64,000 nucleotides of DNA from Sminthopsis crassicaudata. Its lineage: Eukaryota. This document shows, one piece after another, positions 9,938 to 51,521 of the stretch (position 1 is its first letter; each line of letters begins with the position of its first letter). The notes under the pieces were generated by a model. That model ran no database searches, was not told the DNA's origin, and saw only the letters and a program-made list of their open reading frames with translations. The DNA lies in the NCBI RefSeq assembly GCF_048593235.1, contig NC_133617.1, forward strand, positions 669,332,958-669,396,957, written 5' to 3'. A program made the translations under genes and the position numbers.

Positions 9938-10995
9938 CTATCATGGAGGAGTAGAGAAAGCAGAGAACATGAGAGGTGGGGTGAGACAAGACTTATCCCT
10001 GGACCAGACTCTTCACCCCCCCCACCCAGGACCGGCAATTCAGACTCCGCACTTCTGGAGTCCAGCACAGATGGAGATGAGTCCTGGGGTGGGAATGGGG
10101 AGAAAAATCCTTTCACCCTCCTCTAATCTGGAACTGAGATGGGGGATTCCCCAGTGCTAGCCTCCTCACCCCCATAAAACCCTTCATCATACTCACATTT
10201 TGGGGCCCAGCATTGTCAGATCCTGGAGGGGTATGTTTGTATGTTCGGAGGTTAAGGCTGCAGAGACTTACGACTAGCTGTTTGGGGCAGGTGCTGGAGG
10301 CTTCTCCCAGACTGCCACTCCCCATCACCCCGCCCTAGCTCTTTGGGTTGAAAGGAGCAAATTCTCATTCAAATGAACCCCCTCCCCATCCAGCTCAGAA
10401 AAGCAGCGTCTCTAGGCACCTCAGGGGAATGTCATTCAGAGCTCGGGGCCCAGGGGAGGGGAGAGAAGCTGAGCTGTGAGAGGTCTGGGGCCAGGGAAGG
10501 GGATGGGAGCCAGGGAAAATTCTTAAACTGCCTCGGAAAAGCCTGGTGTCCTGGTGAAGATTGGGGGGAGCAGGGTCAGAAAAATGGAGGAGGTAGGGCC
10601 AGAGTATTCCTGCCTTAGACTGGCTCGGACTTCTCCCTACTTCACATTCCCAAGAGTTCCTGGGCACACTGGCCCCTGTGGCTCAATCTATGAGGCCCAC
10701 TTCCTCCCTTCTCTGGCGTTCCTATCTCCATTAGGCTAGCCCTTGGGCATTACCTGCCATTCCTCTAGGGAGAAAGAGAAAAGGGGGCTCCCATCTTTCT
10801 TCTAAAACCTTCTAGCCTTACGCTGCTGTCTCTGAGGATGAACTAGAGGGAAGGGGATATTCCTAAACTTTCCACTTCTGCCTTCTCACTTCCCATTCCC
10901 AGTCCGTTCCCCACTCCCTGCCCCCCAAACCCTTCCAATTCCAGTTCCTCTCTGGGAAAAAATACTCAGACACAGAAGCAGAGGATGAAGCACCA

Positions 10996-13247: not shown

Positions 13248-14462
<1,215 letters not shown>

Positions 14463-17680: not shown

Positions 17681-17812
17681 TGAGGCTGGGGTTAAGTGAC
17701 TTGCCCAGGGTCACACAGCTAGGAAGTCTTAAGTGTCTAAGACCAGATTTGAACTCTGGTCCTCCTGAATTCAAGGCTGGTGCTCTATCCACTGCGTCAC
17801 CTAGCTGCGCCC
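17681..17812 (-). mobile_element. WSINE1-like SINE
   Basis: Near-identical to the 908-1038 copy; T-rich tail. Confidence 0.85.
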
Positions 17813-17959
17813 CCCCCCCTTCATTTTCAATCACTCCTTATATACTGGATACTTCTCTAACATCTACAAAAATGCTCACATTTTTATCCTTTAAAAAAAA
17901 AAAAACAACCTGTCAGATCCCATATTTCTACTATATATCTCCATCTTTTCACAACTAAA

Positions 17960-19260
17960 CTAGAAAAACTCAAGTCTATACTAACTCCCCTCTCACTCGC
18001 ATCTCAATCCTATGAAATCTGATTCTAACTTTATTACTCAAATGAAATTGGCTCTTTCCAAAATTACCAATGACTTCTCTTTTTAAAAAGTATGTCCTGA
18101 TAATTCAAGTCCCCTATTACTTCTACTTGTACAAGCCTGGCTTGTAATCTGTTTTCTGAACCCTGCACCTATTTATTCCTCTTTCTGTTCAAGTTAATTA
18201 CAATATTTATCTATTGTCAAATCTATTGGATTCTTCTCAGTGCTCAAACTCCTTGGTCCCTATGTAGAACTTAATTTTTTATTGTTTTTTGTGCGAGGAA
18301 ATTGCACTTACTTGCCCAGGGTCACACATCTAGCCTTAAGTATGTGAGGCCACATCTGAACTCAGGTCCTCCTGATTTCAGGACTGCTGCTCTATCCAAT
18401 ATGCTATCTAGCTGCCCCATCATGTACGTAATATTTTTGATCACCCTTTTGTGATGGATTTTCATGCCATCTCTTTCCTGATTCTCCTGCTACCAACTAG
18501 TAACTCTTCTTTACTTTCCTTAGTAGGCTCCTGGACTGCCTATGTGTAAATGTACCCTAAGGAGTTTCTCTCTAGGGCCCTTATTTCTTTGCTTACTCCC
18601 AGGAAATTCATTAGCTCCTCCATGTTCAATTGTCATCTATTTATATATGATTCTGAGATCTACAGTAGCCTCTCTCATGAGCCCCAGTCTTGCATCATGA
18701 GCTTACCCATTGGACATTTGCAAAGAGGTACCTTAGTAGTCATCTTAAAATCAGTATGTCCAATATGAAATTCATTTTTTTTCCCTAACTTCCCTGTTAG
18801 GATGGACACCACCATCCATTCTATTTACTCAAGTTCATAACCTCCATATAATCCCTCCTAAGTAGTTGCCAGATTTTATTTCTACTTCCACAGCATCTCT
18901 CATATCTATCCCCTTGTCTCTCTCCACACGGCCATCAACCTGATTCAGGCCCTCATTACCTATTACCTAGACTATTGCAGGTACATCCTAATTGTCCTCC
19001 ATACCCGAGTTATCTCTCCTCTTCAACATATCCTTCATAGAGCTGTCAAATTCAAAGGACTGACTGCTTAAGAAAATCTAGTGGCTACCTATTAACTCCA
19101 GAATCAAATACAAATTGTCAATTTGACATTTAAAGCCCTTCACAGTCTAGCTTAGCTTACCTTTATCTTATGTTCTCTCTTTTACCTACTCTTCATTTCA
19201 GCCAAAACGGCCTACTGATAAGCCCATCTCTGCACCTTTGTACAGCCGGGATGCAGGTGA
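17960..19260 (+). mobile_element. Degraded LINE-2 fragments with an inserted SINE (~18285-18418)
   Basis: L2-like pyrimidine-rich sequence; SINE core. Confidence 0.55.
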
Positions 19261-22200
19261 GAGTGCCAACTTGTGAGGTCTTTCCTGACCCTAGTCCCAG
19301 AGCCAAGATCCTTGTCCCCTGAAAAAGCCAATGTACTTACTTTATATACACTTTATAGCACTCATATGTGCTCAGGTTATTTATTCCCATTTTAATATAA
19401 ACCTGTGGAAGGCCAGGGCTGTTTATTCTCATCTTTGTATCCCTAGCACAGCACCTAGCACAGTACTGGACACATAGTGGACATTAAATACTTGCTGAAT
19501 GGACCTGGGAAATAAAGAAGAAGGCAAAGTCAAAATTGATTCTCATTCATGAGAGTAAAGGAAGGTGCCATGGAAGGGTCAATGGCAATGTGGGCTGGGA
19601 TTAGAAAGAGTTTACAGCTTGAGGAGGAAGTTGCTTACCATCTGTCAAACCAAGAAAGTCCATGCCTGGAAGTATCTAGAAGGAAGAATGTAAGAGGAGT
19701 CAAGAGTTGACGGAATGGGAATGAGTCTGCATTTCTTTTGTAAGACAAGGGCTCAAGAGACTTCCATTACCACAAACCCGGGAGGTAGGTAGTATATGTA
19801 TTATCCCCGTTTTAATGATGAAGGAATTGATGGACTGAGAAAAATGACTTGCCTGTGGTCACATAGTCAAGTTTTAAATGCTTGTTTCCTTACTTCTGTT
19901 TCAATGTTCTTTCCATTAATGTACAGTTATTTCTATAGCTCAAATTTATCCTCTCTATATCCCTGTGAGATATGTAGCATAAGAACCAATATCCCCATGT
20001 GACAAAAAAAGAGGAGAGGCCCAAAGGTATGCCATCTCTCTAGCAGACTTTTTTGTCTCCCTTCCCCTAACTCAGGGGAAAGAGTTATCTCATTGGGTCA
20101 GATTTAGAGTTGAAAGGGGCCTCAGGAACCTTTCATCTTTTCTTTTTTTTTCCAAAAAGGAAACTAAGACCTACAGTGAGGCTACTTAGAGAATCAGGAC
20201 TTAAACCTGTAAGAAATATTAGAAAATTCAGTTCTGTTACTTAAAACCAGAGTGATTTCAGAAAAGTCACTTGACTCTCAGATTTTTTTCCCTTAGTAAA
20301 ATGAGAGGATTGTGCTGGATGATTTCTGAGAAAGAATATTAGTTACAAGGGCTCAAAGAATAATAAATTTAGATGTGAAAGGAGCATCAGAGATCATCTA
20401 GTTCACCTCCTTATTCTACAAATGAGGAAACTGAGGTCCAATGAAGTCAAGTAATTTGTACAAGATCTTGTATCGAACAAAGACCTGAGACCCAAATTCA
20501 GGGCTTCTGTCTCTTAGCTGTTTAGCATATCTCTTAAGTCCTAGGGCTTAGGTTTTCCAGAGTCTGGCCAAAGGAAGCGAATGTGAAATCAAGGCTTTCT
20601 TATTCTTAAGGACCCCAAATTTATTTAGAAAGTGAATGGAAAGATAAGACTCTTTCAACCCTGGAAGAAACTGAGAAGTAAGCTATTTTGGCACTCCAGC
20701 CTGGCAATGGGAGGGGCCCTTGGTCTAAGGCTACATTTTGCCTTTTCATCCCTCTTCGAGGATGGCATCCACGGAAACCACCACCCCATTCCTCCCAAAA
20801 GAAACAAAAGCCAAGAGAGCTACAATTCACCCCATCATTCATAGGTTCCCATTCAAAGAGAGGCATGTAAGCAGGAAACTGTCTTCTCAACCCAAACCTC
20901 TCATCCTCTTCCAGGGCAAATTCAGAGCCAGGGAGACAATCAAAGGGCAGGCCTTCCAAAACCTGGCAGGAAGCTCTGGGCCTGGGCTTGGTCCAAAATC
21001 CTTTGCAGAAGAACCTCCTTAGGCCCAGTGGTTGGGACAGTGGAATGGGACTGAGACTTTCTTTTTCATTAGCAAATAGGAAATGTTTCCAACTTCTGCA
21101 ACATCTCAGCCCTCAGGTGGCTTTATTACCATCCCGAAAAGTACCAGCATTCCTGGGGGCAAAGGGGATTCCAACTGAAGACTCCTGCCTGGGCCATGGG
21201 TGGAGTGGCTGACTTCTTCAGCACTGACCACAGACAGACACAGCTTCCAGAAGGGAAGGAAAGGGAATTTGTGTAATACCAATGCTCCCAGGGGCCTGAA
21301 GACCCAGGGACAGGAGCAACCTCCCCAGGTGCAACTAACTCATTAAAAGATCAGTAGCAGCTTAGTGCTGAGGGATCTCAGGCAGAGCCCTAACTAAGTA
21401 GTATTCCCTATGCACATCAACACCAGGAGCAGTCTTTCCAGCATACACATACACTTCCCATAGTCCTAATAGGCTCAGGTAGCAATTTGAAAACTCCTGG
21501 TAGATTATCTTATTCCCAGAAGCAGCAATTGTCACCTCTTTGTTTAGAAACATTCCTTTAGGCTCAAGAAGCATGAAGAAGAACCGTGGTAGTGACACCC
21601 CACCCCACCCCCACCCCCATTAAACCACAAACAATCTTTTTTTCCTTCACAGGACCTTAGCCCTTTATTGGATCTGAATTTGGAGGTGGAAAAAGGGAAG
21701 GTTTGGGGTCTTGGGACTTGGCTTGTGAAGGGTGAAAAGGAAGGAGTCTTGGGTTTGCACGGGGTGTTTTGTCTGCCTGACCTCTGAGCTGAGGGTCATC
21801 CCATACAGGCTCTCCTACACCAGCATTTTCTCACTGTAGCTGATTTGGAGAGGATCCTGCCTTTCCAGAAGCCTGGACTATCACAACAGACTTCATTCCA
21901 AAGGAACTAGACACTTCAAGGTGCCTAAGGCCTTTCAATTAGACCTGTATTTTCCCACAGCCTCGAGAAGAGAAGGGAATGGGCTTGAGGTGTGAACATG
22001 TGGGAGGGCACAGAGATAGGGGCCAAAAATAGATCAGAACCAGTGAAAGGATCAAAAGAATCCTAGAAGGTATAAACTGGGAGATTAAAAAAGCCCAGAT
22101 TTTGAGCTGGATAGGACCTTCAAACCCCTATACTGCACACATGGGAAAACTGAGGCTCAGAAAAAGGAAGTTACTTACTTGCCCAAGGTCACAGAGGCAC

Positions 22201-22519
22201 AACTGGGAGGTTTGGTAGACTGGGGAGAACTCCCTGGGATAAGGAAAACTCAAGAGAGACAGTGGATGCTCTGTAGGGCTTGGTGAGAAATTGGGGGAGG
22301 GGCTGGTTCAGAAAACCTACACGAGAAGTAAATGAGGAAAAGCCTGGCCCGCGTTGTTTTGTTATGCTTTGGTTTTGAGGGGGTGTGACCTTGATGAATA
22401 TATGGAGTACTGAGAGAAGAAACCTAAGAAATAGAGGGCCCCAAGACTGAGGCACAGGGAATAAGGCAGGAAGCTGGGAGAGCTGGACTGTACTAATAGA
22501 GCAGGTTAGAGAATGGCAA

Positions 22520-23100
22520 GGATGGGGATGAAGATAGAGATGGGGTGGGGATGGAGATGGGAGTGGGGGTGGGGATGGAGATGAGAAGATGGGGGTGGGG
22601 GTGAGGATAGAGATGGGGTGGGGATGGAGATGGGGGTGGGGATGGAGATGAGAAGATGGGGGTGGGGATGAGGATAGAGATGGGGTGGGGATGGAGATGG
22701 GGGTGGGGATGGAGATGAGAAGATGGGGGTGGGGATGAGGATAGAGATGGGGTGGGGATGGAGATGAGAAGATGGGGGTGGGGGTGAGGATAGAGATGGG
22801 GTGGGGATGGAGATGGGGGTGGGGATGAGGATAGAATAGAGGTAGGGAAGAGGGCTGGAGATGGGGGGTGGGGATGAAGATAAGAGTAGAGGTGGGGAAG
22901 ACGATTGGAGAGGGGGGTGGGGATGGGGTAAGAATGGGGTGGGAATGAGGAAGATAGAGACGAGGATGGGGATGGAGTAGGGGAAGAGGATGGGAGTGTG
23001 GTGGGGATGAAAATGAGAGAATAGGGATAAAGATGAGGGTGGGGGTGGGGATGAAGACGGGGATAGGAATGGGGATGAAGAAGATAAAAAGAACGAAGCC
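22520..23100 (+). repeat. G-rich degenerate tandem repeat (GGGGTGGGGAT(G)GAGAT units; ~67-bp higher-order unit)
   Basis: Visible periodicity of G4-5 runs. Confidence 0.9.
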
Positions 23101-23149
23101 AGGGGAGTCTGGGGCAGTGGAACAGTAAAATATGTTTAAGTGTGTATGA

Positions 23150-24500
23150 TCGGAGAGTCCCAGAGCTTCTAAGTATGGGGTCAGCAAGATCTCGGTCCTG
23201 GGGCACCTGGTACGTATGAGAACGGTGGGATACGGTGGATAAAGAAGGGGGTGGGAGGGGCAGGGAACCTGGGGGTCGTGGGGGTTTCGGGCGGCTGGGG
23301 CGGAAGGCCCGAAAAGATGTAAGAATGGGAAAATTCTGGGTGGGGAGCTATGACTGTGGAGAGACTTATGAAAGGGAGGGTGGTGGGTGCAAGGGGTAGC
23401 TTGGGTCGGGAAAGGGAGGGGAGGGCAGGGCAGGAGAGGGCGGGAGGGGGAGGATTGGAGTGGGGGAGGGGCTCCGAGGAGCCCCCCAGCCCCGCCCCCT
23501 CGGCGCTGCCTCCGGCCCGGCCCGGCAGACTGAGCCGCCGACGCCGCCGCCGACGCCGCCATGGCCAGGCCCCGGGCCCAGCGCCCCCTCTGGACGACCC
23601 GGGCCGGCTCGGCCCCGCGGGCCCAACACCTACCGGCCGCCGCCGCGGGGACCCGGGACCAGCCTCTGCGCCGCCTCCGCCGCTCCAACATGGCCGCCCC
23701 GCTGAGGGCCGGAAGTGCAGCTCCACTTCCGCTTCCGGCCCCCCCCCTCCTCAGAGCCCCCCTCCCAGACTGGGGACCCCCGGCCCCTCCCCTACCCCCA
23801 GGGTCTCCGCCCCCTAGGGTCTCCCGCGCCCCCACGTGGCGGTTGCTGGTCCTATTTTAGCTCTAGTCCAGTTCAACTAGACTTTGGGGAGACCACAGCC
23901 CTGCCCTCAGGGAGCCTCCAGTTTGGGGGAAAAACCCAGGCCTACCTTTCGGGAGCCTCCAGATTGGGAGAGAAACTCCGCTCTAAGGGCTGGAAGGTCT
24001 CGATCTGAGGAGGGGATTGAAGCCCGCCCTCAGGGAGCCTTTATGTGGGGGGGAATTACAGCTCCCCGCTGGGAGCTCTGGGGGCAGGAGAGGAAGCTCC
24101 TACCCTAATCCTTTTAAGACCGTCTGTCGGAGGGACACTCCCCTGGCCTAACTCCCGAGGACGACGTTGGGCGCAGTAGCGCCCTCATGACCCCGACAGC
24201 GCGGACCTCGAGCCCTCACGTGGCGCGAGGACACAGCAATCGAAGCACGTGTGGCTCGGATGGCCTCCCCCTATTATCTTTTTCCCCCTGAGTTTTCTTA
24301 ACCCCTCCCTCTGACCGCTCAAGTCTCCTTGCCAGAAAATCGCCCACAACAGCTCTGGTTGTCCCCCAGGCGCTGTACTGAACCCTTTTCTCCGAGACCC
24401 TTTTCCTGGCCATTGCATCAGCCGCCTTCCACGAGTTCTCGTTCTCGCGCATTCTTTGTGCACGTGACTTCTTCTACAAGCTAATACTCTGAGTTCCAAT
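23150..24500. promoter_or_regulatory. CpG-island promoter of CCDC71 (ETS CCGGAAGT/CACTTCCGCTTCCGG, YY1-like AACATGGC, four CACGTG E-boxes)
   Basis: High GC/CpG density; motifs read directly. Confidence 0.8.
23634..23730 (-). other. CCDC71: CCDC71 5' exon 1 (TSS approximate)
   Basis: CCG|GTAGGT donor inside a CpG island, next to ETS and YY1 motifs. Confidence 0.55.
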
Positions 24501-38046: not shown

Positions 38047-38648
38047 TGTAATGCCAGAGAAACTGAGCAAGATAGAGATTAGAGAGTACTCAATACAGAA
38101 TTTATTAAATGGAGAGATTTACTGGGACCAATGGATTCATGGTTGGTCCCAGGGCTGAACTACACTATCATCTCAAAGAATCCAGCACCAAGGTCAGATA
38201 CACAAGATTCTTTATAGAGTAACAAGAACAATGACATCATGGGGGAGGTACCTGGATGGGGCTGACCAATGGGGGGTCACCTAGGATGACATAATGGGAA
38301 GTACTGGAGAGCCTCCTGATATTCTAATGATGTCTAAAATAGATAAAGACCTTTATCCTATCAAACATTAAGGGGGAATGCTTATAACCTGAGGCAAAAT
38401 AACTGAATGGGACAATTAGGGAAACTGGGTCAGGATATTAAAAGAAAACTGTGAGGGGCAGCTGGGTGGCGCAGTGGATAGAACACCAGCCCTGAATTCA
38501 AGAGGACCTGAGTTCAAATCAGGTCTCAGACACTTAACACCTTCTAGCTGTGTGACCCTGGGCAAGTCTCTTAACCCCAGCTTAAAAAAAAGAAAAAGGA
38601 AAAAAAAATGATAACTGTGACACTACAAGGGAAAACTGGGACACAACA
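38047..38648 (-). mobile_element. Nested solo LTR (family B)
   Basis: TG...CA termini; imperfect TSD AAAG/AATG. Confidence 0.75.
38455..38609 (+). mobile_element. WSINE1-like SINE nested in LTR B
   Basis: Full head to A-tail; TSD GAAAACTGTGA/GATAACTGTGA. Confidence 0.9.
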
Positions 38649-41110: not shown

Positions 41111-41385
41111 TTAGTGACTTGTTCTCAGTCTGGGAACCCTAGCAACCTGGCTGGGGGTTCCTGCAAGCTTGACATGACCTGGAAGAAGCCCAGGCTTTGG
41201 GGCATGTTGAGGAAGCATTGCTCCTGTGGTTTCTTTGGTCTCTCCCTGATTCAGTCCCCGGAAATGGTTACGTAGCTCTCGAACACTGATGCCAGACCGA
41301 ACGATGGTATCAAATTTACGGAATTTGCTTGGAGTGGTCAAGGGTTGAGGCATTGTGCTCAGGGGTTTGTGCTCCATAGGACCAC
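41111..41385 (-). CDS. Unnamed 201-aa gene, last coding exon (…PSKFRKFDTIVRSGISVRELRNHF…RTSH*)
   Basis: CTTCCTTAG acceptor, phase 1 in frame, open to TAA. Confidence 0.7.
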
Positions 41386-41693: not shown

Positions 41694-41826
41694 CTGGTGC
41701 TGATGCCTGACTACTGTTTAGAGCCTCCATGTCTCTGTCTCCATCTCTATCTAGGGCAGCAATGGTATCCAAAAGGAACTTCAGGCTCTCCTGCTCCCTT
41801 GGACTTAGACCCTCCAGGTCTGGTTC
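41694..41826 (-). CDS. Unnamed 201-aa gene, exon 3 (EPDLEGLSPREQESLKFLLDTIAALDRD; SARG/PROSER2-like motif)
   Basis: TTCTTCTCCTTGCAG acceptor, CAG|GTGAGA donor, 133 nt, phases match both neighbours. Confidence 0.75.
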
Positions 41827-43020: not shown

Positions 43021-43632
43021 TTATGTTACAGAGAAGGCACATTACACACATATGTCATGCAGCAAAATCTAAGTCCTGATTGAAGTCTTGAAGGAAGACT
43101 GGAGGAATCTGCAGAGTATTCATGGAACACGTAAAATTTTAGTTGGCTTTTAATAAGGTAACTTAGGAAGGGAGGTCTTTTAGATCTTAGGAAGAAGGGA
43201 AAATAGAAACAGAGGCTCAAAGATGGGATAAAATGGCAAATTCAGGGATCAGTAAAAAGTCAAAGGTCATAAGGAACAATAGATCCCAAAGGCATCTCAG
43301 GGAAAGTCAGATAGAAGTAACAGTGTTGGCCACAGCATTTCCCACCTGGGGATTCTGGCATTCGAACTGCCCTCCCTCTTCATCTGTATCCATCCTCTTG
43401 TCTCAGCCGGAATGGTTGGACTTCAGGATCCTGGGAATCATAAGCTGGGTTGGTGGACAGCCTGGAAAGTTCAGATCTCCTTATCTCCTCCCCTCCCCCC
43501 TTCTGTTCCCTATTTTTTACCTGGACAAAGCTTATAGTACTTTGACTCCTGTTGCAGCAAGGGATGTTCTAAGGAGCTTTCCAACTATAGCAATGCCAAC
43601 CTGTCCTAGAGGATACAGAAGGTGCCCATTAC

Positions 43633-43817
43633 CTGTTCAGCTTTCTGGCTATTCAGGAGACACTGGCCAGGCTCTGGCCGGATGCAGGATGCTGACCTGG
43701 GTCTTGCCCTCCAGTTGATGGATGCTTCTGTTCCTGCCCAGGATGCACCCCCTTGCACTAGACACCTGTCCTGGCCAAAGGTTAGCATGGGCAAGGGAGG
43801 GGCAGGCAGGTGATGTC
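43633..43817 (-). CDS. Unnamed 201-aa gene, exon 2 (HHLPAPPLPMLTFGQ...INWRARPRSASC...QKAEQ)
   Basis: TTGTTTACACAG acceptor, CAG|GTAATG donor, 185 nt open. Confidence 0.7.
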
Positions 43818-44657
43818 CTGTGTAAACAAGAGCTACTTCCCGGTGGTGACTAGTCGGGCAGCTGTGTCAACACTAACGCTTCTATGGAGAGAGGCTCCCC
43901 AACAGGAAAAAACCGAGCCCTTAGTCACCTTGTCTCCACCCACCCCTCCCCCAGGTCCTGATTAGATACACTTTCCCTTCTTCCCGTGCAGGGGTATCCC
44001 AGGTAGCTCGAGCCATCCCTGCTGGAGACATTGAGATGACCCATTCTGGGACAAATGTGAGAGGCAAAAACTAAGCCAGTCACTCCTCATCCCCCTTCAA
44101 ACCCCTTTGGCTTATCCAACAAAGGTCTTCATCCGCTCCGCCCTCCAGCCAAATTGGCCACTATCTACATCGACCACTAGACCTGCCATCTCTGATCTCC
44201 ACGTTTTTGACTGGGCCATGGCCTTTATCTGGAGAATCCTCAGTTTCCTTCAAGGTTCGGTTTAAGGGTCATCCCACGCATGAAGTCTTTCCAGATTTTT
44301 CCAGGTGATTAGCCCAGATTTCTCTCCTCCTTAATTATCTTGCCTTTACTTGTAGTAAATGTGGTGTTATAGCCTCCAGCTCAGTTAGGAACTTACATTC
44401 CTCTGGCACCTGGCTGAGTGTCTCATCCTTAGCAGACACTTCATAAATGTTTGTTGAACTGGATTTTAATTTGGTTAGAACCCACGGGAGGGTAGAACTG
44501 AGCTGGGGGCAGGAGATAGGACAGAGATTAGGTTAGAATTCTAAAAGTCATAACCATGATATATATGCACGTTTTACAAGTGTTATTTCATCTCGCCTCT
44601 CAACCCCTCCCCCAAAACACCCCCCCTCAAAAAAAAAACTCCAGACACTGGTTACTA

Positions 44658-44796
44658 NNNNNNNNNNNNNNNNNNNNNNNNNNNNNNNNNNNNNNNNNNN
44701 NNNNNNNNNNNNNNNNNNNNNNNNNNNNNNNNNNNNNNNNNNNNNNNNNNNNNNNNNNNNNNNNNNNNNNNNNNNNNNNNNNNNNNNNNNNNNNNN
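44658..44796. other. Assembly gap (139 N)
   Basis: N run. Confidence 1.
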
Positions 44797-45338
44797 GTTG
44801 AAGAAGTTGAGGTGCGAAGAAATTGTGCCAAGTCACCCAGTTACCAAGCGTCTGAGGCAGGAGATGGACCCCTCCCCCACGCCTTTTCAATAATGCAAAA
44901 TCCAGTCATCTGACTATTCCGCAATATTGTCCACGAAGGATCTTAAATGATCATAATTTAGTGTAAAAAGAAAGGCCCTCGGGGTCATCTGGTGCGACCC
45001 TACGGTTCTGTAGATTGCTTGAAGTCGCGCAGTTAGCAATCAGCGGGACTTCCCGGGGATTAGCAGGCTCGAGGCCAGAGATTACATGGCTATAGGGGCA
45101 GACTTAAAGGTCAGTGAATCTAAAGACCCAGAGGAATAAGGCTGGGTTGGAGTTAGGGCTTTAAGGGCCTGGGGGGGAGGGGAGTGCCCAAACAACCTGG
45201 AGTCGCGAGGAGAGTTAGGAGAGTGTGGAGAGGGAGGGGTGGGGGTTGGGAGAAGCTTCCTCTAGGAGGGGGAGGAGTCAGCTGTAGTTCTTGCCCCGCC
45301 CCCAAGTCGCACTGGAGGAACTGGCCAGAGCCGCTCAC

Positions 45339-45351
45339 CAGGGGGCGCCAT
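45339..45351 (-). CDS. Unnamed 201-aa gene, exon 1 coding part (MAPP)
   Basis: ATGGCG followed by CTG|GTGAGC donor; phase 1 joins exon 2 in frame. Confidence 0.6.
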
Positions 45352-45885
45352 AAGATTGGGGCCGGAATGCAGACACTCTAGCCCAGGCCTGGCGGCCAGT
45401 TCCGGTGTCCGTAGTGCCGGCAACCTGTGGCCGGAAGCCAGGAGCCGGGACAGCGCTGCTAAGGCTACTTGCTAGGCGGGCACTGGGACTGACCGCCCGC
45501 CCACCCAGCTGTGGGGAGCCGCGACCTGGCGCTGGCATGCCTCCAGGCCCCGAGGCCGCCACTTGGTCCTTCTCCTCCCGAGATGTCACGGACTGCTGAG
45601 TCCTGACCTCCGGTTCCCCCCGGCCCAGGCAGCTCTCCCCTCAGCCAGTCAGGTTCTTTCTCTCCTGGAGCGACCCGGACTCCTCACGCCTCGGACAGCC
45701 CCTCCCCCGTTAGCCCGTCTCTTGCGGGCCACAGAGACCCCGTGCAGACTCCCTGCAGCCCCTTGCCGACTTTCCCTCTTTAACCCTCCCCCTGCACCTG
45801 AAATCCCGCTCCTTCCCTAATCCCCAACTCCTTCCCCTCCTTAATCGGTTTTCCCCAAGTCTCAGCCCCTCCCCTCTCGCAAGGC

Positions 45886-46273
45886 ATGAGCGCGGAGGAG
45901 CTGGATGCTTGCTCGGGGGACCCAGACCCGAGCCGGCCCCCCGGCCCCCCGGCGGTGGCTGCAGGCGCAGAGCAGGATGGGAAGGCAGAGAGCCTCGAGG
46001 CCCCGAGGAGGACTCCTTCACCCTCGGGGAGCCCGGGCCGGGAGGAGCCCGGGAAGCCCCTGGGCCCCCGTCCCGCTGGAGGCCCGGGAGCTGAGGGTCG
46101 GGACTCTCCTGGCTCCCCTGAACATCCCCTCCCCGTGAGAACCAAAAAACTGGTCCTTCACATGGACATAAACAACACCATCTTCGTGTCTGACAGCGCC
46201 ACGGGGGAGGGGCCCAAAGCCGCCCTCAGCTCCTACTTGAGCTCCGTGTGTTGGGGGCATTTCAACCAGGAGG
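45886..46273 (+). CDS. Uncharacterised HAD-superfamily protein (418 aa), exon 1 (low-complexity N-terminus, motif I LVLHMDINNTI)
   Basis: GGCATGA start, GAGG|GTAAGA donor, 388 nt. Confidence 0.88.
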
Positions 46274-47697
46274 GTAAGAAGCATCCCGGGCTCCGCACCG
46301 GTGCCAGGGGCCCAGTGGTCTTAGGCGGCCTCCAGTTACCCCCGAGGGTGAGGGAGGGGGCCGAGGAAGGAGAGGCGCGGGTGGTCTGGAAGGAAATGCT
46401 GAGATGTGACCTAGGCTCAAACCGTAGAACTTCGCCGAGCTTCAGGTTCTGTTTCTGTAAAGGGGATTTTTAACACAGGGTTTTGTAATGCTCATGTGCC
46501 CTTTTTATCCTTTCTTCTTCCTTGATGGTGCAAGTCTAAAGTGTCCTAACCCCCTCCCCACCCCCGGTTTCTCTGGAGACACTCTCCCTCTTCCCTGGAG
46601 CTGGGTGGAGCCCGTGGAAGATTCTGGGTAGAAGTGGTCAGTGGGTCACTCCCTGTGGTCTTGAGCACGTTGCTGTGCTGTGACTCAAGCAGTTGTTCTG
46701 GAAACTGGAGGGTTCATAGCGTTATGGATTAATTGGTTGCAGGGATCTGGGAAAGAAAGTCATCTTACTCCACCACAAAGGAGTCAAGTAGGCGAGGGGC
46801 CGAGCCCAAAGTCCCGCCGGGAGGGACAGTAGTAACTATCTAGTTACTAGGGAACTCGAACTAGGCAGTCTTACTGACTGGCCTTTTCTCCACTTCCTGT
46901 GCCACTTCCTCAGATTCCTCAGTTAAGAGCTCTAGGGACTTTGGGCAGATCCCTACTTTAGTGAACCTCAGTTTGTCACCTCTGTCTGGAAGGCTGATAA
47001 CAACCACTACTTAGGTCACTGGGCTGTTGTGCAGAAATCATTTTGTATAAAGGCAATTGCTGATGCAGTGGTTAGAGCCCTGGGCCTGAAGTCAGGAAGA
47101 CCAGAGTTCAAATCAGCCTCAGACACTATTTGACTCTGAGCAAATCATTTTGCTTCTGTCTGCCTCGGTTTCCTCTCTACAAATGGAGATAATTATAGTA
47201 TCCACCTTTTGGGGTTGTTAGGATCAAATGAGATAATATTTCTAAAGTGCTTCACAAACCCTAAAGAACCATAGAAATACAAACTATCATTCCAAAGTGA
47301 CATAGAAATGGCTGTTATTATTCCCCTCTCAAAATAAATGGCCCTGGAAAAATCACTTAAACTCCTAATATTCTGTGCAACCCTTTTAAATTTTGAAGAT
47401 GATTGATAAAGGGAGTTTCCTTGCCTGAAATTCTCTACATGGATGAAATCACAAATTTATGTAGGAAAAAAAATCTGTCTTCATCTCAGTTTTATTTTCT
47501 GGGAAATGAAGGACTTGCAGTAGATAGATAAATCTAGGAACGCACTTCTGATTACTGACTGATCACTGGGTTTGGAGGGCTAGCCACCATTGAGCTCCAT
47601 GTCTGAGGGGGGTTAGAGAAATCCCCTCCATGATTTTTGGCCACATTCCATGTCTCATCTACTACATACCCCAACTCTGGATTCCTTTCTCTTTCAG

Positions 47698-48083
47698 GTA
47701 AGTGGCAGTGGCTGAGTGAGCTCCCTTCATTGCTGCCCCCTACCCCTGATGCCAGCAGCTTCTCCTCAATTTTTGGCCGGCACACCAAGTTTATATCGAG
47801 TACGCTGGGCCACCCCTTCCAGTCACTCTTCTCCTCCTACTTGCAGCTGTTGGAGTGGCCTGGCCAGCCGAACTCAGTTTTCTCTGTCCTAGGGGAGGAT
47901 GGCCGTCATTACCACCGGGTGTTGCCAGCCTTTTTCAAATTACTGGCTGGTCTTTCTCAGCAGGGCCGCCGCTTTGCCATCATTTTCCGCACCTTTGGCA
48001 AAGACTTGACCTCACTACTTCAGACCACACACAGTGCCCTTCAAGGCCAGCACCCGCAGTTCTCAGCCTTGAAAGAGGTGATG
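47698..48083 (+). CDS. HAD-like protein exon 2 (GKWQWLSELPSL...motif II AIIFRTFG...)
   Basis: TTTCTCTTTCAG acceptor, ATG|GTGAGC donor, 386 nt open. Confidence 0.9.
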
Positions 48084-48251
48084 GTGAGCAATTCTCTTAA
48101 GGGAAACCAGAGTAGGAGCTCCTCTGGAGAGATTCAGCAGTCTAGTGACTGAAGAGCAGCCATTCTGTCTTAGAACTGGGGGGAAGGGAAGCAGGGGAGA
48201 TGGGTAACACTTGGGATGTGGGTGGGCCTCAACCCCTCCCTGTCCCTGCAG

Positions 48252-48412
48252 CTCCCTGTGGACCTGCGACCTGGAAAGATCCGCTGCAGTTCAAATAAGG
48301 TGATGGTCAGTCGAGGGAAAGAATCTGTGTCCAGTTGGCCAGATGCAAGAGTTGTGTATGACTACTTCAGTGCCATGGAAGGCCTGGGGGGCTTTCAGGA
48401 CCACTTTGCTTG
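48252..48412 (+). CDS. HAD-like protein exon 3 (LPVDLRPGKIRCS...GLGGFQDHFAW)
   Basis: CCCTGCAG acceptor, TG|GTAATA donor, 161 nt. Confidence 0.9.
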
Positions 48413-49101
48413 GTAATAACAATAACAACCCAAAAGAGTTATTTAGCACTATCCATTTATAAAGTACTTTGCTCACAAAGCCTTAGAAGATAGGCAGTGC
48501 AAGTATTATTTTCAGCGTTTTACAGATGAAAATAAAGACTCAAAGAGAAGTAATTTGTTCAGTGTAACAGAACCAGTAAGTGGTAGAGCCCAATTTCAAA
48601 CCTCTGTTCTGGGCCTTCCAGATTTCTTTCTGTCCCCCTCTCTTCCCCTCTCCTCCCCCCCGCCCCCCGTTTCCCCATCCCCCTGAAAGCTACCCAGGAC
48701 CAAAGAAGGTAACTAGTAATCCAGTTTCTCCATAGAGCCCATTTTGGGCATCCATCCCCTCCAAAATACCTTGTCAGTATTATCCCCTCCATGAATGAAG
48801 CCTTCCCTGAACTCTTGGTGCATTGTAATTACTTAATATTTATTGTCTTGGCTTTGTGATTTGATGTCAGCAACTCTCATGCTAGATAGTCCAAACAGTA
48901 AAAGCTTATTTTGTGTCCTGTGGCTGATGGTCCTACCTTTGGATTGGATTTGGGTGAACCCAAGTAGAACTTTCATACTAGCTCACCTATCACTGGCATA
49001 AAGCCAGTTGGGATAGTGCTAATCTGAAGCTCCACCTAAGGACATTATGAGTTCCATGATTATCTCCCCTACAATATCCTCCATTTTCCCTTTCTCTCTA
49101 G

Positions 49102-49234
49102 GTGGTCCAGGAACAATTTCTCCAGTCAAGGTGGCAAGCCACTGTGGGTTGATCCCCATGATCCTGAAGTCCAACACATCTGTTTTGATGATAACATTCG
49201 ACTACAGGATAGGGAGAGCATCATCCACCCTCAG
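49102..49234 (+). CDS. HAD-like protein exon 4 (motif III GGKPLW, motif IV ICFDDNI)
   Basis: TTTCTCTCTAG acceptor, CAG|GTACAA donor, 133 nt. Confidence 0.9.
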
Positions 49235-50521
49235 GTACAAATAGAATGGAATATTGGGAGGGAGAGGAGATAGCCTTTATCTCACAGAGACATAGGGGCT
49301 TGGAGGCAGGAAAACTTGAATTCAAACCCACACTTCAGCCTCACACTTAGCTATGTGATCCTGGGTCAAGTTGAGTCAATAAGTCAACCAAAATTCACTT
49401 TTTAAGAAATGTTATTTCATTTTCAATTCTGAATTTTCCCTTTACTCCCACTCTCCCACACATTGAGGAGGCAAGAAAAACAAAACTCATTACAAATATA
49501 TGTAACCAAAGCTTTTTTTTACTAAAGTCCTTACTGTAGGTCAGACACTACTAAGTGCTAGGGGCATAAAGAAAGGCAAAAAATATCCCTGCTTTTAAGT
49601 GGCTCATACTTTAATGGAGGAAGCAACATGGGAACAACTGTGTGTAGAAATCAGATGTATTAGACATAATATTAAAGGAAAGTCACTAAAATTAAGGAGA
49701 ATCAAGAAAAGCTTTTTGCAGAAGATGGGTCATGAGGCTGAAATAAGGAGAGTTGTAAGGATGGAGCCCAGTCATTTAAAATGCTAAAATTTATACACTT
49801 GAGATGGAGAATTATTTGTGAGGAACAGTAAGGAGATCACTTGTTTTTGTGTTTTAAATAGTATTTTATTTTTTTCTATTTACATATAAAATCAATTTTT
49901 AACATTTAAAAATTTTTTTCAGTTCCAATTTTTTTCTCTCCCTTGCCTTCCCCTTCCCTGGGACAATAAAGTCATTTGATGTATGTCTTATGTTTAATCA
50001 TGTAAAACATTAAAAAGATTAGTCACTGGGTTCAGAGTATGTAGAAAGAAGTAAAGATATAATAAGACTGAAGAGGTAGGAGAGGTCCAGGTTAGAAAGC
50101 TTTAAAAGCCAAGCAGTGGATTTTATATTTGATCCTGAAGGTAGTAAGTCACTAGTAGATCTCTCTCAGCTTGTTTCTTCATCCATAAAATGAGGGAATT
50201 AGGCTTTTTTGCTTTCCTTCCAGCTTGAATTCAGTGATCCTATGAATGGAATCAACCTGAGTTCTTAACCCATCATAAAATTTGGGCCTGCCAAAAGTTA
50301 GTTATGCTAGGATTAGGTTGATTTCCAAGCCTCTGTCAGCATTGGCCTCTTTGGAAGGAACTGAAGATTGGAGTCTTCCCTGGTGGCTAAAGAATGGATG
50401 TGATTTTGTGCAGCATATTGCTGGGCAGAGACCCTCTTCCGAGTCTCATACAGAGATACCACTATATTCTATCCCCACGAGGTCTGTTTATGTGTGTATC
50501 CTATTATATTCTCGGCTACAG

Positions 50522-50710
50522 GTGTTTATGGGACAGGGAGGACAAGAATACTGTACAGTCCCTACCTCTGAACTCTACGGCATCTGCCTAGTGCAAAACG
50601 ATCTCCTTCAGGCCATTGCCAATCCTGACTACTTCTTGATGACTGTGAGCCAGTGTGAGGATCGGTATGACCAATACTTGTCAAAGGTCCAGGCAGACAA
50701 TGGCTATTGA
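50522..50710 (+). CDS. HAD-like protein last exon (VFMGQGG...LVQNDLLQAIANPDYF...GY*)
   Basis: CTACAG acceptor, phase 0, open to TGA; total CDS 1257 nt. Confidence 0.88.
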   Translation: MFMGQGGQEYCTVPTSELYGICLVQNDLLQAIANPDYFLMTVSQCEDRYDQYLSKVQADNGY

Positions 50711-51398
50711 GAAATCAATTCAGGTGACTAATGGACTTCCAGACCACTACAACAAATAGTGCTCCTGAACATCATGGCAAGTTGTCTGTTCCATTTTAAT
50801 CAGAATGGGGAGGGGGCACAAGGTAAGAAGAGTCTTTGTATCTGGCTTTTATCATTTCTGCAGTCTCTTTTGGCTTGGGCCAAGATGAGAGTTGTAAATG
50901 GAGAATTGATCTCCCCTTTCACTTCCAGGACCTTTGCACATGGACATTTGTCTTGGGTAGGGGGATTTAGCTCTACTTTGGCTTCTGTTACACAAAATGA
51001 TGCTTATGTGATTGGAATCTACACATTAAAATCCAGCTTCAATGCTGGGTCAAACACTGCTTCTCTCTTTTTCTCACTGGCTAGATGGAGTAGACCTATA
51101 GTTGGTACAGTTGGGTTCTGAGGGGAGGACTTGGGATGAGGTTAACTGTGGCTCAACCATTGCCAGCAGTAAAATGAAAGTGGGTCATCCCGATTTCCAC
51201 AGTAGGTCTAAGGTAAATATGGAATAGAATAGAAAACATTTATTAAGTCTTTACCATATGGCAAGCAGTATTGGGAAAGCAGTGATGATCCTGAGGATTA
51301 GAATAGTTAGGGTCTGTGTTATCTTATCAGAGGTTAGAATAGAGAAGTCAGTATCCAGTCAGAATTAGACATGGAAGTAGAACTCTGATGTACCAACT

Positions 51399-51521
51399 TG
51401 TCAGGAGCCAAAAACGTGAATATGTTTGGTGGTGTTATGGGAAAAACAGAGCCCTTGGCTCCTGACAGAACTCCTAGTATACTGTTTTTCCCATAACACC
51501 ATCAAACATATTCTTGTTTTT
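51399..51521. repeat. Two interleaved inverted repeats (13 bp perfect; 32 bp with one mismatch)
   Basis: A 51399-51411 / A' 51455-51467; B 51418-51449 / B' 51482-51513. Confidence 0.95.

Follow-up and report, generated by a model that had tools for sequence, protein, structure and literature searches.

The locus between CCDC71 and KLHDC8B

We analyzed a 64,000-bp stretch of the genome of the fat-tailed dunnart Sminthopsis crassicaudata (hereafter the window). Two uncharacterised genes were located in it, a small gene on the minus strand and a gene on the plus strand designated here as gene X. According to the open reading frames and the annotation, both sit between CCDC71 and KLHDC8B, and their 5' ends face each other. 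The main features of the locus are listed below.

13248–14462, minus strand: CCDC71-like ORF, single exon, 404 aa
41111–43393, minus strand: small gene, coding region
44658–44796: run of N inside the spacer between the small gene and gene X
from 45886, plus strand: gene X
60706–61110 and 63680–63859, plus strand: first exons of the kelch-repeat gene KLHDC8B, present in the dunnart annotation

The head-to-head order is kept in dunnart, Tasmanian devil, koala, and opossum, representing four marsupials of three orders. The first-pass annotation, made from the dunnart sequence alone, had described a head-to-head pair of uncharacterised genes, and this description was borne out in all four species.

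The surroundings of the pair contain several further features. A CpG-rich stretch at about 22900–24300 (GC 0.64, CpG o/e 0.59) may hold a 5' exon of the CCDC71-like gene; the chicken neighbour of gene X bears the Pfam domain CCDC71L. This stretch adjoins a long low-complexity tract at 22189–23835, which produces spurious ORFs with His-Pro and Pro-Ser repeats, and the GC skew over 22001–23000 is 0.68. The first exons of KLHDC8B lie inside a 2-kb CpG island (GC 0.68, o/e 0.65), and an intron of this gene contains a (CA)n/(TG)n microsatellite at 62451–62800. Copies of an interspersed element, presumably a marsupial SINE, were found at 955–1200, 17700–17960, 38416–38611, 52210–52441, and 57099–57414; their ORFs include GPEFKSGLRH and LDLNSGPPDFRAGALST. 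The Rfam search gave zero matches across the whole window.

Coding region and kinship of the small gene

The small gene is missing from the gene tables of the dunnart and opossum records, while its orthologues are annotated in Tasmanian devil (139 aa), koala (152 aa), and tammar wallaby (152 aa). All three proteins start with MDTDEEGG. The last exon of the dunnart gene, used as a query, matched three marsupial proteins at E values of 1e-33 to 8e-38, and tblastn of the devil, koala, and wallaby proteins mapped the MDTDEEGG start to the minus-strand ATG at 43393 of the window. The full-length protein comparisons were made with the annotated orthologues, and the dunnart exons were taken singly. 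The coding segments on the minus strand are as follows.

43346–43393: first coding segment, containing the genuine start codon (MDTDEEGGQFECQNPQ), residues 1–16, located by tblastn
41694–41826: second coding exon, encoding the N-terminal motif LSPREQESLKFLLDTIAALD, located by tblastn and splice sites
41111–41385: last coding exon with the motif RKFDTIVRSGISVRELRNHF and the stop codon

The corresponding segments were also located by tblastn in devil, koala, and opossum. The ATG at 43393 and its surroundings are kept in the alignment of the four marsupials, and the exon at 41694–41826 is identical in dunnart and devil at the protein level. The dN/dS ratios of the dunnart gene were 0.40 versus devil, 0.28 versus koala, and 0.27 versus opossum, and all indels across the four marsupials were multiples of three. 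The small gene is therefore a real, constrained coding gene. From this start codon, the dunnart product is predicted to be a protein of 151 aa. The exon carrying the ATG is preceded by a conserved acceptor AG at 43432–43431, and at least one non-coding exon should therefore be present upstream.

The first-pass annotation had instead proposed a 201-aa protein starting at a minus-strand ATG at 45351–45349, which is followed by GTGAGC 13 nt on. That model was assembled from 45351–45339, 43817–43633, 41826–41694, and 41385–41114 and skipped the true ATG exon. Its first piece was as follows.

45339–45351, minus strand: proposed 13-nt "coding exon 1"; all four species retain the GT that follows 45339

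In the four-species alignment, the proposed ATG is present in dunnart and devil only, and GTA is found in its place in koala and opossum. The next piece of the model, the 185-nt exon at 43633–43817, has lost a net 32 nt in devil and gained 4 nt in koala, contains further small non-triplet gaps, and is also frameshifted in opossum. The 201-aa model was rejected, as the ATG at 45351 is not conserved and the 185-nt exon contains frameshifting indels; the orthologues start at the position corresponding to 43393. The first 66 codons of the model are thus not conserved as coding sequence. At best, a non-coding first exon would end with the segment 45339–45351, and together with 43633–43817 this segment could represent 5'UTR at most. 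The distance of 535 bp given earlier between the two start codons is exact for the ATGs at 45351 and 45886, but the real coding starts of the two genes are 2,493 bp apart in dunnart. In the other species this distance is about 2.5 kb (koala), 2.2 kb (devil), and 3.1 kb (opossum). The gene model should be corrected to 151 aa from the ATG at 43393, in place of 201 aa from 45351.

A profile built from the three marsupial proteins detected a homologue of 266 aa in the lizard Pogona (E 1e-5), which contains the same two motifs, including RLRKFDTIVRSGVNVQELRSRF. In the ESM Atlas, where matches below 0.9 were treated as leads only, the nearest clusters for the koala protein were all SARG/PROSER2 (0.90, 187 shared features). 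SARG/PROSER2 clusters were also nearest to the Pogona homologue (0.95, 215 features). Both queries lay below the recognition mark, which makes these two matches weak evidence. The small-gene relatives found among the ESM Atlas clusters come from chordates only. The devil protein matched the Pfam family PF15385 (SARG) over the N-terminal motif with 13.3 bits and an E value of 0.045, the gathering cut-off being 27, and no Pfam match was obtained for the koala, wallaby, or Pogona proteins.

The small protein shares with SARG (C1orf116) and PROSER2, the proteins of PF15385, an N-terminal motif of the type LSxEExExLxFLxxTIxxLD. Like them, it has a second motif around RSG, the rest of the chain being disordered. 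In contrast to SARG/PROSER2 proteins of 300–600 aa, it is only 151 aa long. Judged by its sequence, it resembles a short, largely disordered relative of this family. The first-pass description of the minus-strand gene as encoding an uncharacterised disordered protein with motifs thus held, with the addition that the gene is real and SARG/PROSER2-like. It may represent a third, short branch of SARG/PROSER2 proteins, present in marsupials and at least one lizard and perhaps worth attention in its own right.

Gene X, an uncharacterised family with HAD-like motifs

Gene X corresponds to LOC141551530 of S. crassicaudata. Its 416-aa product is 100% identical to isoform X2 of the RefSeq record, and the translation of each exon is a substring of the LOC141551530 protein. 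The five coding exons total 1251 nt, which equals 416 codons and a stop codon. All of them are on the plus strand.

45886–46273: coding exon 1 with the ATG, residues 1–129; GT donor after 46273
47698–48077: coding exon 2, residues 131–256; part of a cap-like insert and motif II (FRTFGxD)
48252–48412: coding exon 3, residues 257–310; donor TG/GTAATA
49102–49234: coding exon 4, residues 310–354; acceptor AG at 49100–49101, donor CAG/GTACAA
50522–50710: coding exon 5, residues 355–416 and the stop codon; acceptor CTACAG

The ATG at 45886, from which a HAD-like gene had been proposed to start, is the annotated start of LOC141551530, is followed in the same exon by the GT donor after 46273, and is kept in the alignment of the four marsupials. 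Exon 1 encodes a disordered Pro/Gly-rich N-terminus and the HAD-like motif I (LVLHMDINNT), and exon 4 encodes the motif III lysine (GGKPLW) and motif IV (FDDN). Two more isoforms are annotated. The locus recorded for isoform X1 is identical to the window, its position 10001 falling at 45886. Isoform X1 (418 aa) has a recorded range of 45886–56126, extending 5.4 kb beyond the stop codon at 50710, and isoform X3 comprises 365 aa; gene X therefore has alternative 3' exons.

Exon 2 as a query retrieved 305 homologues at E≤0.001. Gene X is an orthologue of zebrafish si:dkey-32e6.3 and chicken LOC416055. Orthologues, all annotated as uncharacterised, were found in seven other marsupials, platypus, echidna, turtles, lizards, tuatara, many birds, a ray, sturgeon, gar, many teleosts, and hagfish, and remoter homologues were detected in a flatworm, a sea slug (a gastropod), and the cryptophyte Guillardia. 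The family appears to be an ancient eukaryotic one. Placental mammals are missing from the best 120 of 194 matches, and gene X has apparently been lost in placentals. No literature was found under dkey-32e6.3, LOC416055, or six marsupial and monotreme LOC identifiers. No Pfam family was assigned to the exon translations, and four full-length family members gave none at E≤1.

Some records of gene X in other vertebrates can be added here. The chicken orthologue is transcribed, since about 100 short contigs of sequencing runs contain its intact spliced ORF. One of the chicken contigs (run SRR27537798, 8222 nt) contains the fully spliced coding sequence of X joined unbroken to 6.8 kb of upstream genomic DNA including CCDC71. 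In Polypterus senegalus, a 1438-aa protein annotated as "UBP19 hydrolase, partial" includes the X domain at residues 1154–1276 and probably reflects a gene model that merged the adjacent genes USP19 and X.

Conservation within the family was scored on an alignment of 40 sequences. The invariant or nearly invariant residues are the nucleophile Asp D94 and T98 (LVLHxDxxxT, both nearly invariant), T228 (RTFGxD), K322 (GGKPLW, invariant), and D339–D340 (FDDN), and they follow the order typical of HAD proteins, with motif I, the threonine of motif II, the lysine of motif III, and the acidic pair of motif IV. The canonical DxDx(T/V) form of motif I was not found, as the second Asp is missing family-wide. 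The +2 position, counted from D94, is Asn in vertebrates, Arg in most other homologues (those named are invertebrate), and never Asp in the 40 sequences. The AlphaFold model of X has a pLDDT of 83.6 and is confident except for the first ~80 residues. VIA-align returned mostly HAD-fold proteins, namely Fcp1, SCP1, UBLCP1, CTDNEP1, MDP-1, beta-phosphoglucomutases, and the P domains of P-type ATPases, at Z of 5.4–7.6, values below 8 not being decisive. Foldseek against the PDB found nothing for X at E≤0.001, and queries of PDB sequences, whether exon 1, exon 2, or the family profile, matched nothing above chance level; the profile retrieved no HAD protein.

The order of motifs (hhhhD...T, T, K, DD) is the same as in HAD proteins of the FCP1/SCP1/CTDNEP1, MDP-1, and beta-phosphoglucomutase types, and the Rossmann-like core of HAD phosphatases is tentatively predicted in X as well. 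The X family differs from HAD phosphatases in having Asn or Arg instead of the second Asp of motif I and in carrying large inserts between motifs I and II and between motifs II and III. It also has neither a Pfam model nor a PDB sequence match, and its Z is 7.6 at maximum. On the motifs and the middling fold scores (Z <8), we read gene X as encoding a HAD-like protein with an atypical motif I, in agreement with the earlier suggestion of an atypical phosphatase-fold protein. Most likely, this protein would act as an atypical phosphotransfer enzyme or bind phosphate. This ancient family with a HAD-like look, an unusual motif I, and no Pfam model may merit separate attention.

Promoter readings and history of the gene pair

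The two start codons had been placed on one bidirectional CpG island. The interval 45339–46273 has a GC content of 0.672 and a CpG o/e of 0.56, as compared with 0.23 for the whole window; local 200-bp windows within 45300–45900 gave 0.58–0.67, single ones reaching 0.62–0.67. In the window's two other CpG-rich stretches, o/e is 0.59 and 0.65. The criteria of Gardiner-Garden and Frommer (at least 200 bp, GC ≥0.5, o/e ≥0.6) were used to define CpG islands. The homologous 650 bp have o/e of 0.56 in devil, 0.42 in koala, and 0.30 in opossum. The CpG-island status of this interval is borderline and lineage-dependent. Enrichment in CpG relative to the background is real, but the o/e falls just below 0.6 in dunnart and is lower in koala and opossum.

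Comparison of the four marsupials revealed the following conserved non-coding blocks.

45290–45440: best-conserved block of the spacer, candidate core of a shared promoter, with ACTTCCGG, CACCGGAACTGG, and GGGGCGGGGC
45528–45625, plus strand: another conserved block, 5' of the X ATG, candidate TSS/5'UTR region of X, with GCCGCCAYTTGG and GATGTCACGGAC
43633–43817, minus strand: conserved non-coding block with a conserved AG and a conserved CAG/GTAAT donor

Identity to dunnart over 45286–45474, the best-conserved part of the spacer, is 0.89–0.92 in devil, 0.79–0.84 in koala, and 0.70–0.77 in opossum. We take ACTTCCGG and CACCGGAACTGG to be ETS-type sites and GGGGCGGGGC to be a GC box (Sp1). The CpG-enriched block with ETS/Sp1-type motifs at about 45290–45625 would serve as the promoter region of X. 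The role of this block for the small gene is less clear, and shared and separate promoters appear about equally probable.

With a shared promoter, a non-coding exon of the small gene would start in the X promoter block and end at the conserved GT after 45339, making the promoter bidirectional; the chances of this step are roughly balanced. Both transcripts would then start in the ETS/Sp1 block, a few hundred bases apart, and the genes would be co-regulated. The first-pass annotation had taken it as necessary that both TSSs lie in the interval 45339–46273; here this is one of two candidate arrangements. The short non-coding exon 1 ending at 45339 might be followed by a non-coding exon 2 (43817–43633) before the ATG exon. 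Such an arrangement, to which we assign just under an even chance, is consistent with the top spacer conservation of 45286–45474 and with the retention of the GT after 45339 in four species. It also fits 43817–43633, where acceptor and donor are both conserved as in an internal exon, and the conserved acceptor of the ATG exon, which demands an exon upstream. The ETS and GC-box motifs agree with it too, being typical of bidirectional promoters. However, the donor after 45339 is weaker in koala and opossum (GTGAC versus GTGAG), and the CpG enrichment fades in the same two species. A shared promoter alone would not prove a functional link between the genes.

The segment 43633–43817 can be read either as a 5'UTR exon or as the small gene's own CpG-poor promoter together with its first exon. 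Under the latter reading, which has a substantial though minority share of our confidence, the small gene would possess a tissue-restricted promoter at about 43820–43900, its first exon would end at the 43633 donor, and the CpG-enriched block would serve X only. Conservation runs for about 80 nt past the putative acceptor, to about 43900, and this upstream sequence includes E-box and forkhead-like motifs. The CpG o/e of 43600–43900 is 0.16, and this block lies 2 kb away from the CpG-rich region; these observations fit a separate promoter. Against it, the AG and the polypyrimidine run at 43818–43830 are conserved, as expected for an internal exon, and the conserved GT at 45339 would need another explanation.

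The history of the pair was followed in other vertebrates by reading 10 kb on each side of gene X. In chicken, the gene order is CCDC71(-), X(+), KLHDC8B(+), and IHO1(+), and the spacer between X and CCDC71 is 2.78 kb long with a CpG o/e of 0.64. In sculpin, X(+) is located 1.4 kb downstream of USP19(+). In gecko and anole, neither a listed gene nor a tblastn match of the small gene was found within 10 kb upstream of X. When the chicken, gecko, anole, and sculpin loci were searched by tblastn with the marsupial proteins and the Pogona homologue, the matches did not exceed chance level, although diverged orthologues of such a short, disordered protein may escape detection. No placental orthologue of the small gene was found in protein and profile searches. 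These results agree with an apparent absence of both genes from placentals, as no orthologue of either gene was matched (for X, among the best 120 of 194 matches), and both genes would be invisible to work confined to human and mouse.

The first-pass annotation went further and took joint retention and joint loss as a sign of a functional link. Since X is kept with other neighbours in chicken and a teleost, and nothing similar to the small gene was found within 10 kb upstream of it in two lizards, retention of the pair is not joint. In addition, the genes are adjacent, and one deletion between CCDC71 and KLHDC8B would therefore explain their joint absence from placentals while saying nothing of function. 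The proposed link is not upheld on either count. A module in which the HAD-like protein has the small disordered protein as its adaptor, regulator, or substrate, and in which both genes are retained and lost together, could account for the head-to-head order in four marsupials of three orders and for the failure to find either gene in placentals. It is nevertheless quite unlikely: X is retained next to CCDC71 (chicken) or USP19 (fish), and in two lizards no such gene lies within 10 kb of it, X predates animals while relatives of the small gene were found in chordates only, and adjacent genes can vanish in one deletion. Scarcely probable is a more elaborate version, in which X, devoid of the general-acid Asp, might keep its phospho-aspartate for long or do no more than bind phosphate, and X and the small protein would form a co-transcribed enzyme–partner pair dating back to early amniotes or mammals and jointly deleted in placentals.

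We consider it probable that the locus contains an ordinary divergent gene pair, with a promoter block belonging to X, a small gene whose coding region starts at 43393, and no evident functional link between the two. Gene pairs that diverge from a CpG-rich spacer are a common arrangement. The pairing would be a neighbourhood of the marsupial lineage rather than a conserved module, although a homologue of the small gene exists in Pogona and the pairing may be older, going back to amniotes. The pair as such has little significance, as there is no sign that it acts as a functional unit.

Among known systems, the spacer can be compared with vertebrate bidirectional CpG-island promoters. It differs from them in the distance between the coding starts, which is 2.49 kb in dunnart, and in an o/e of 0.56, under the classical cut-off, with still lower values in koala and opossum. 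The usual definition of such pairs refers to TSSs, less than about 1 kb apart. The X–CCDC71 spacer of chicken, 2.78 kb long, is also CpG-rich. In common with bidirectional CpG-island promoters, the dunnart pair has the head-to-head orientation, and its spacer is likewise CpG-enriched, contains conserved ETS-type and GC-box motifs, and has no TATA box.
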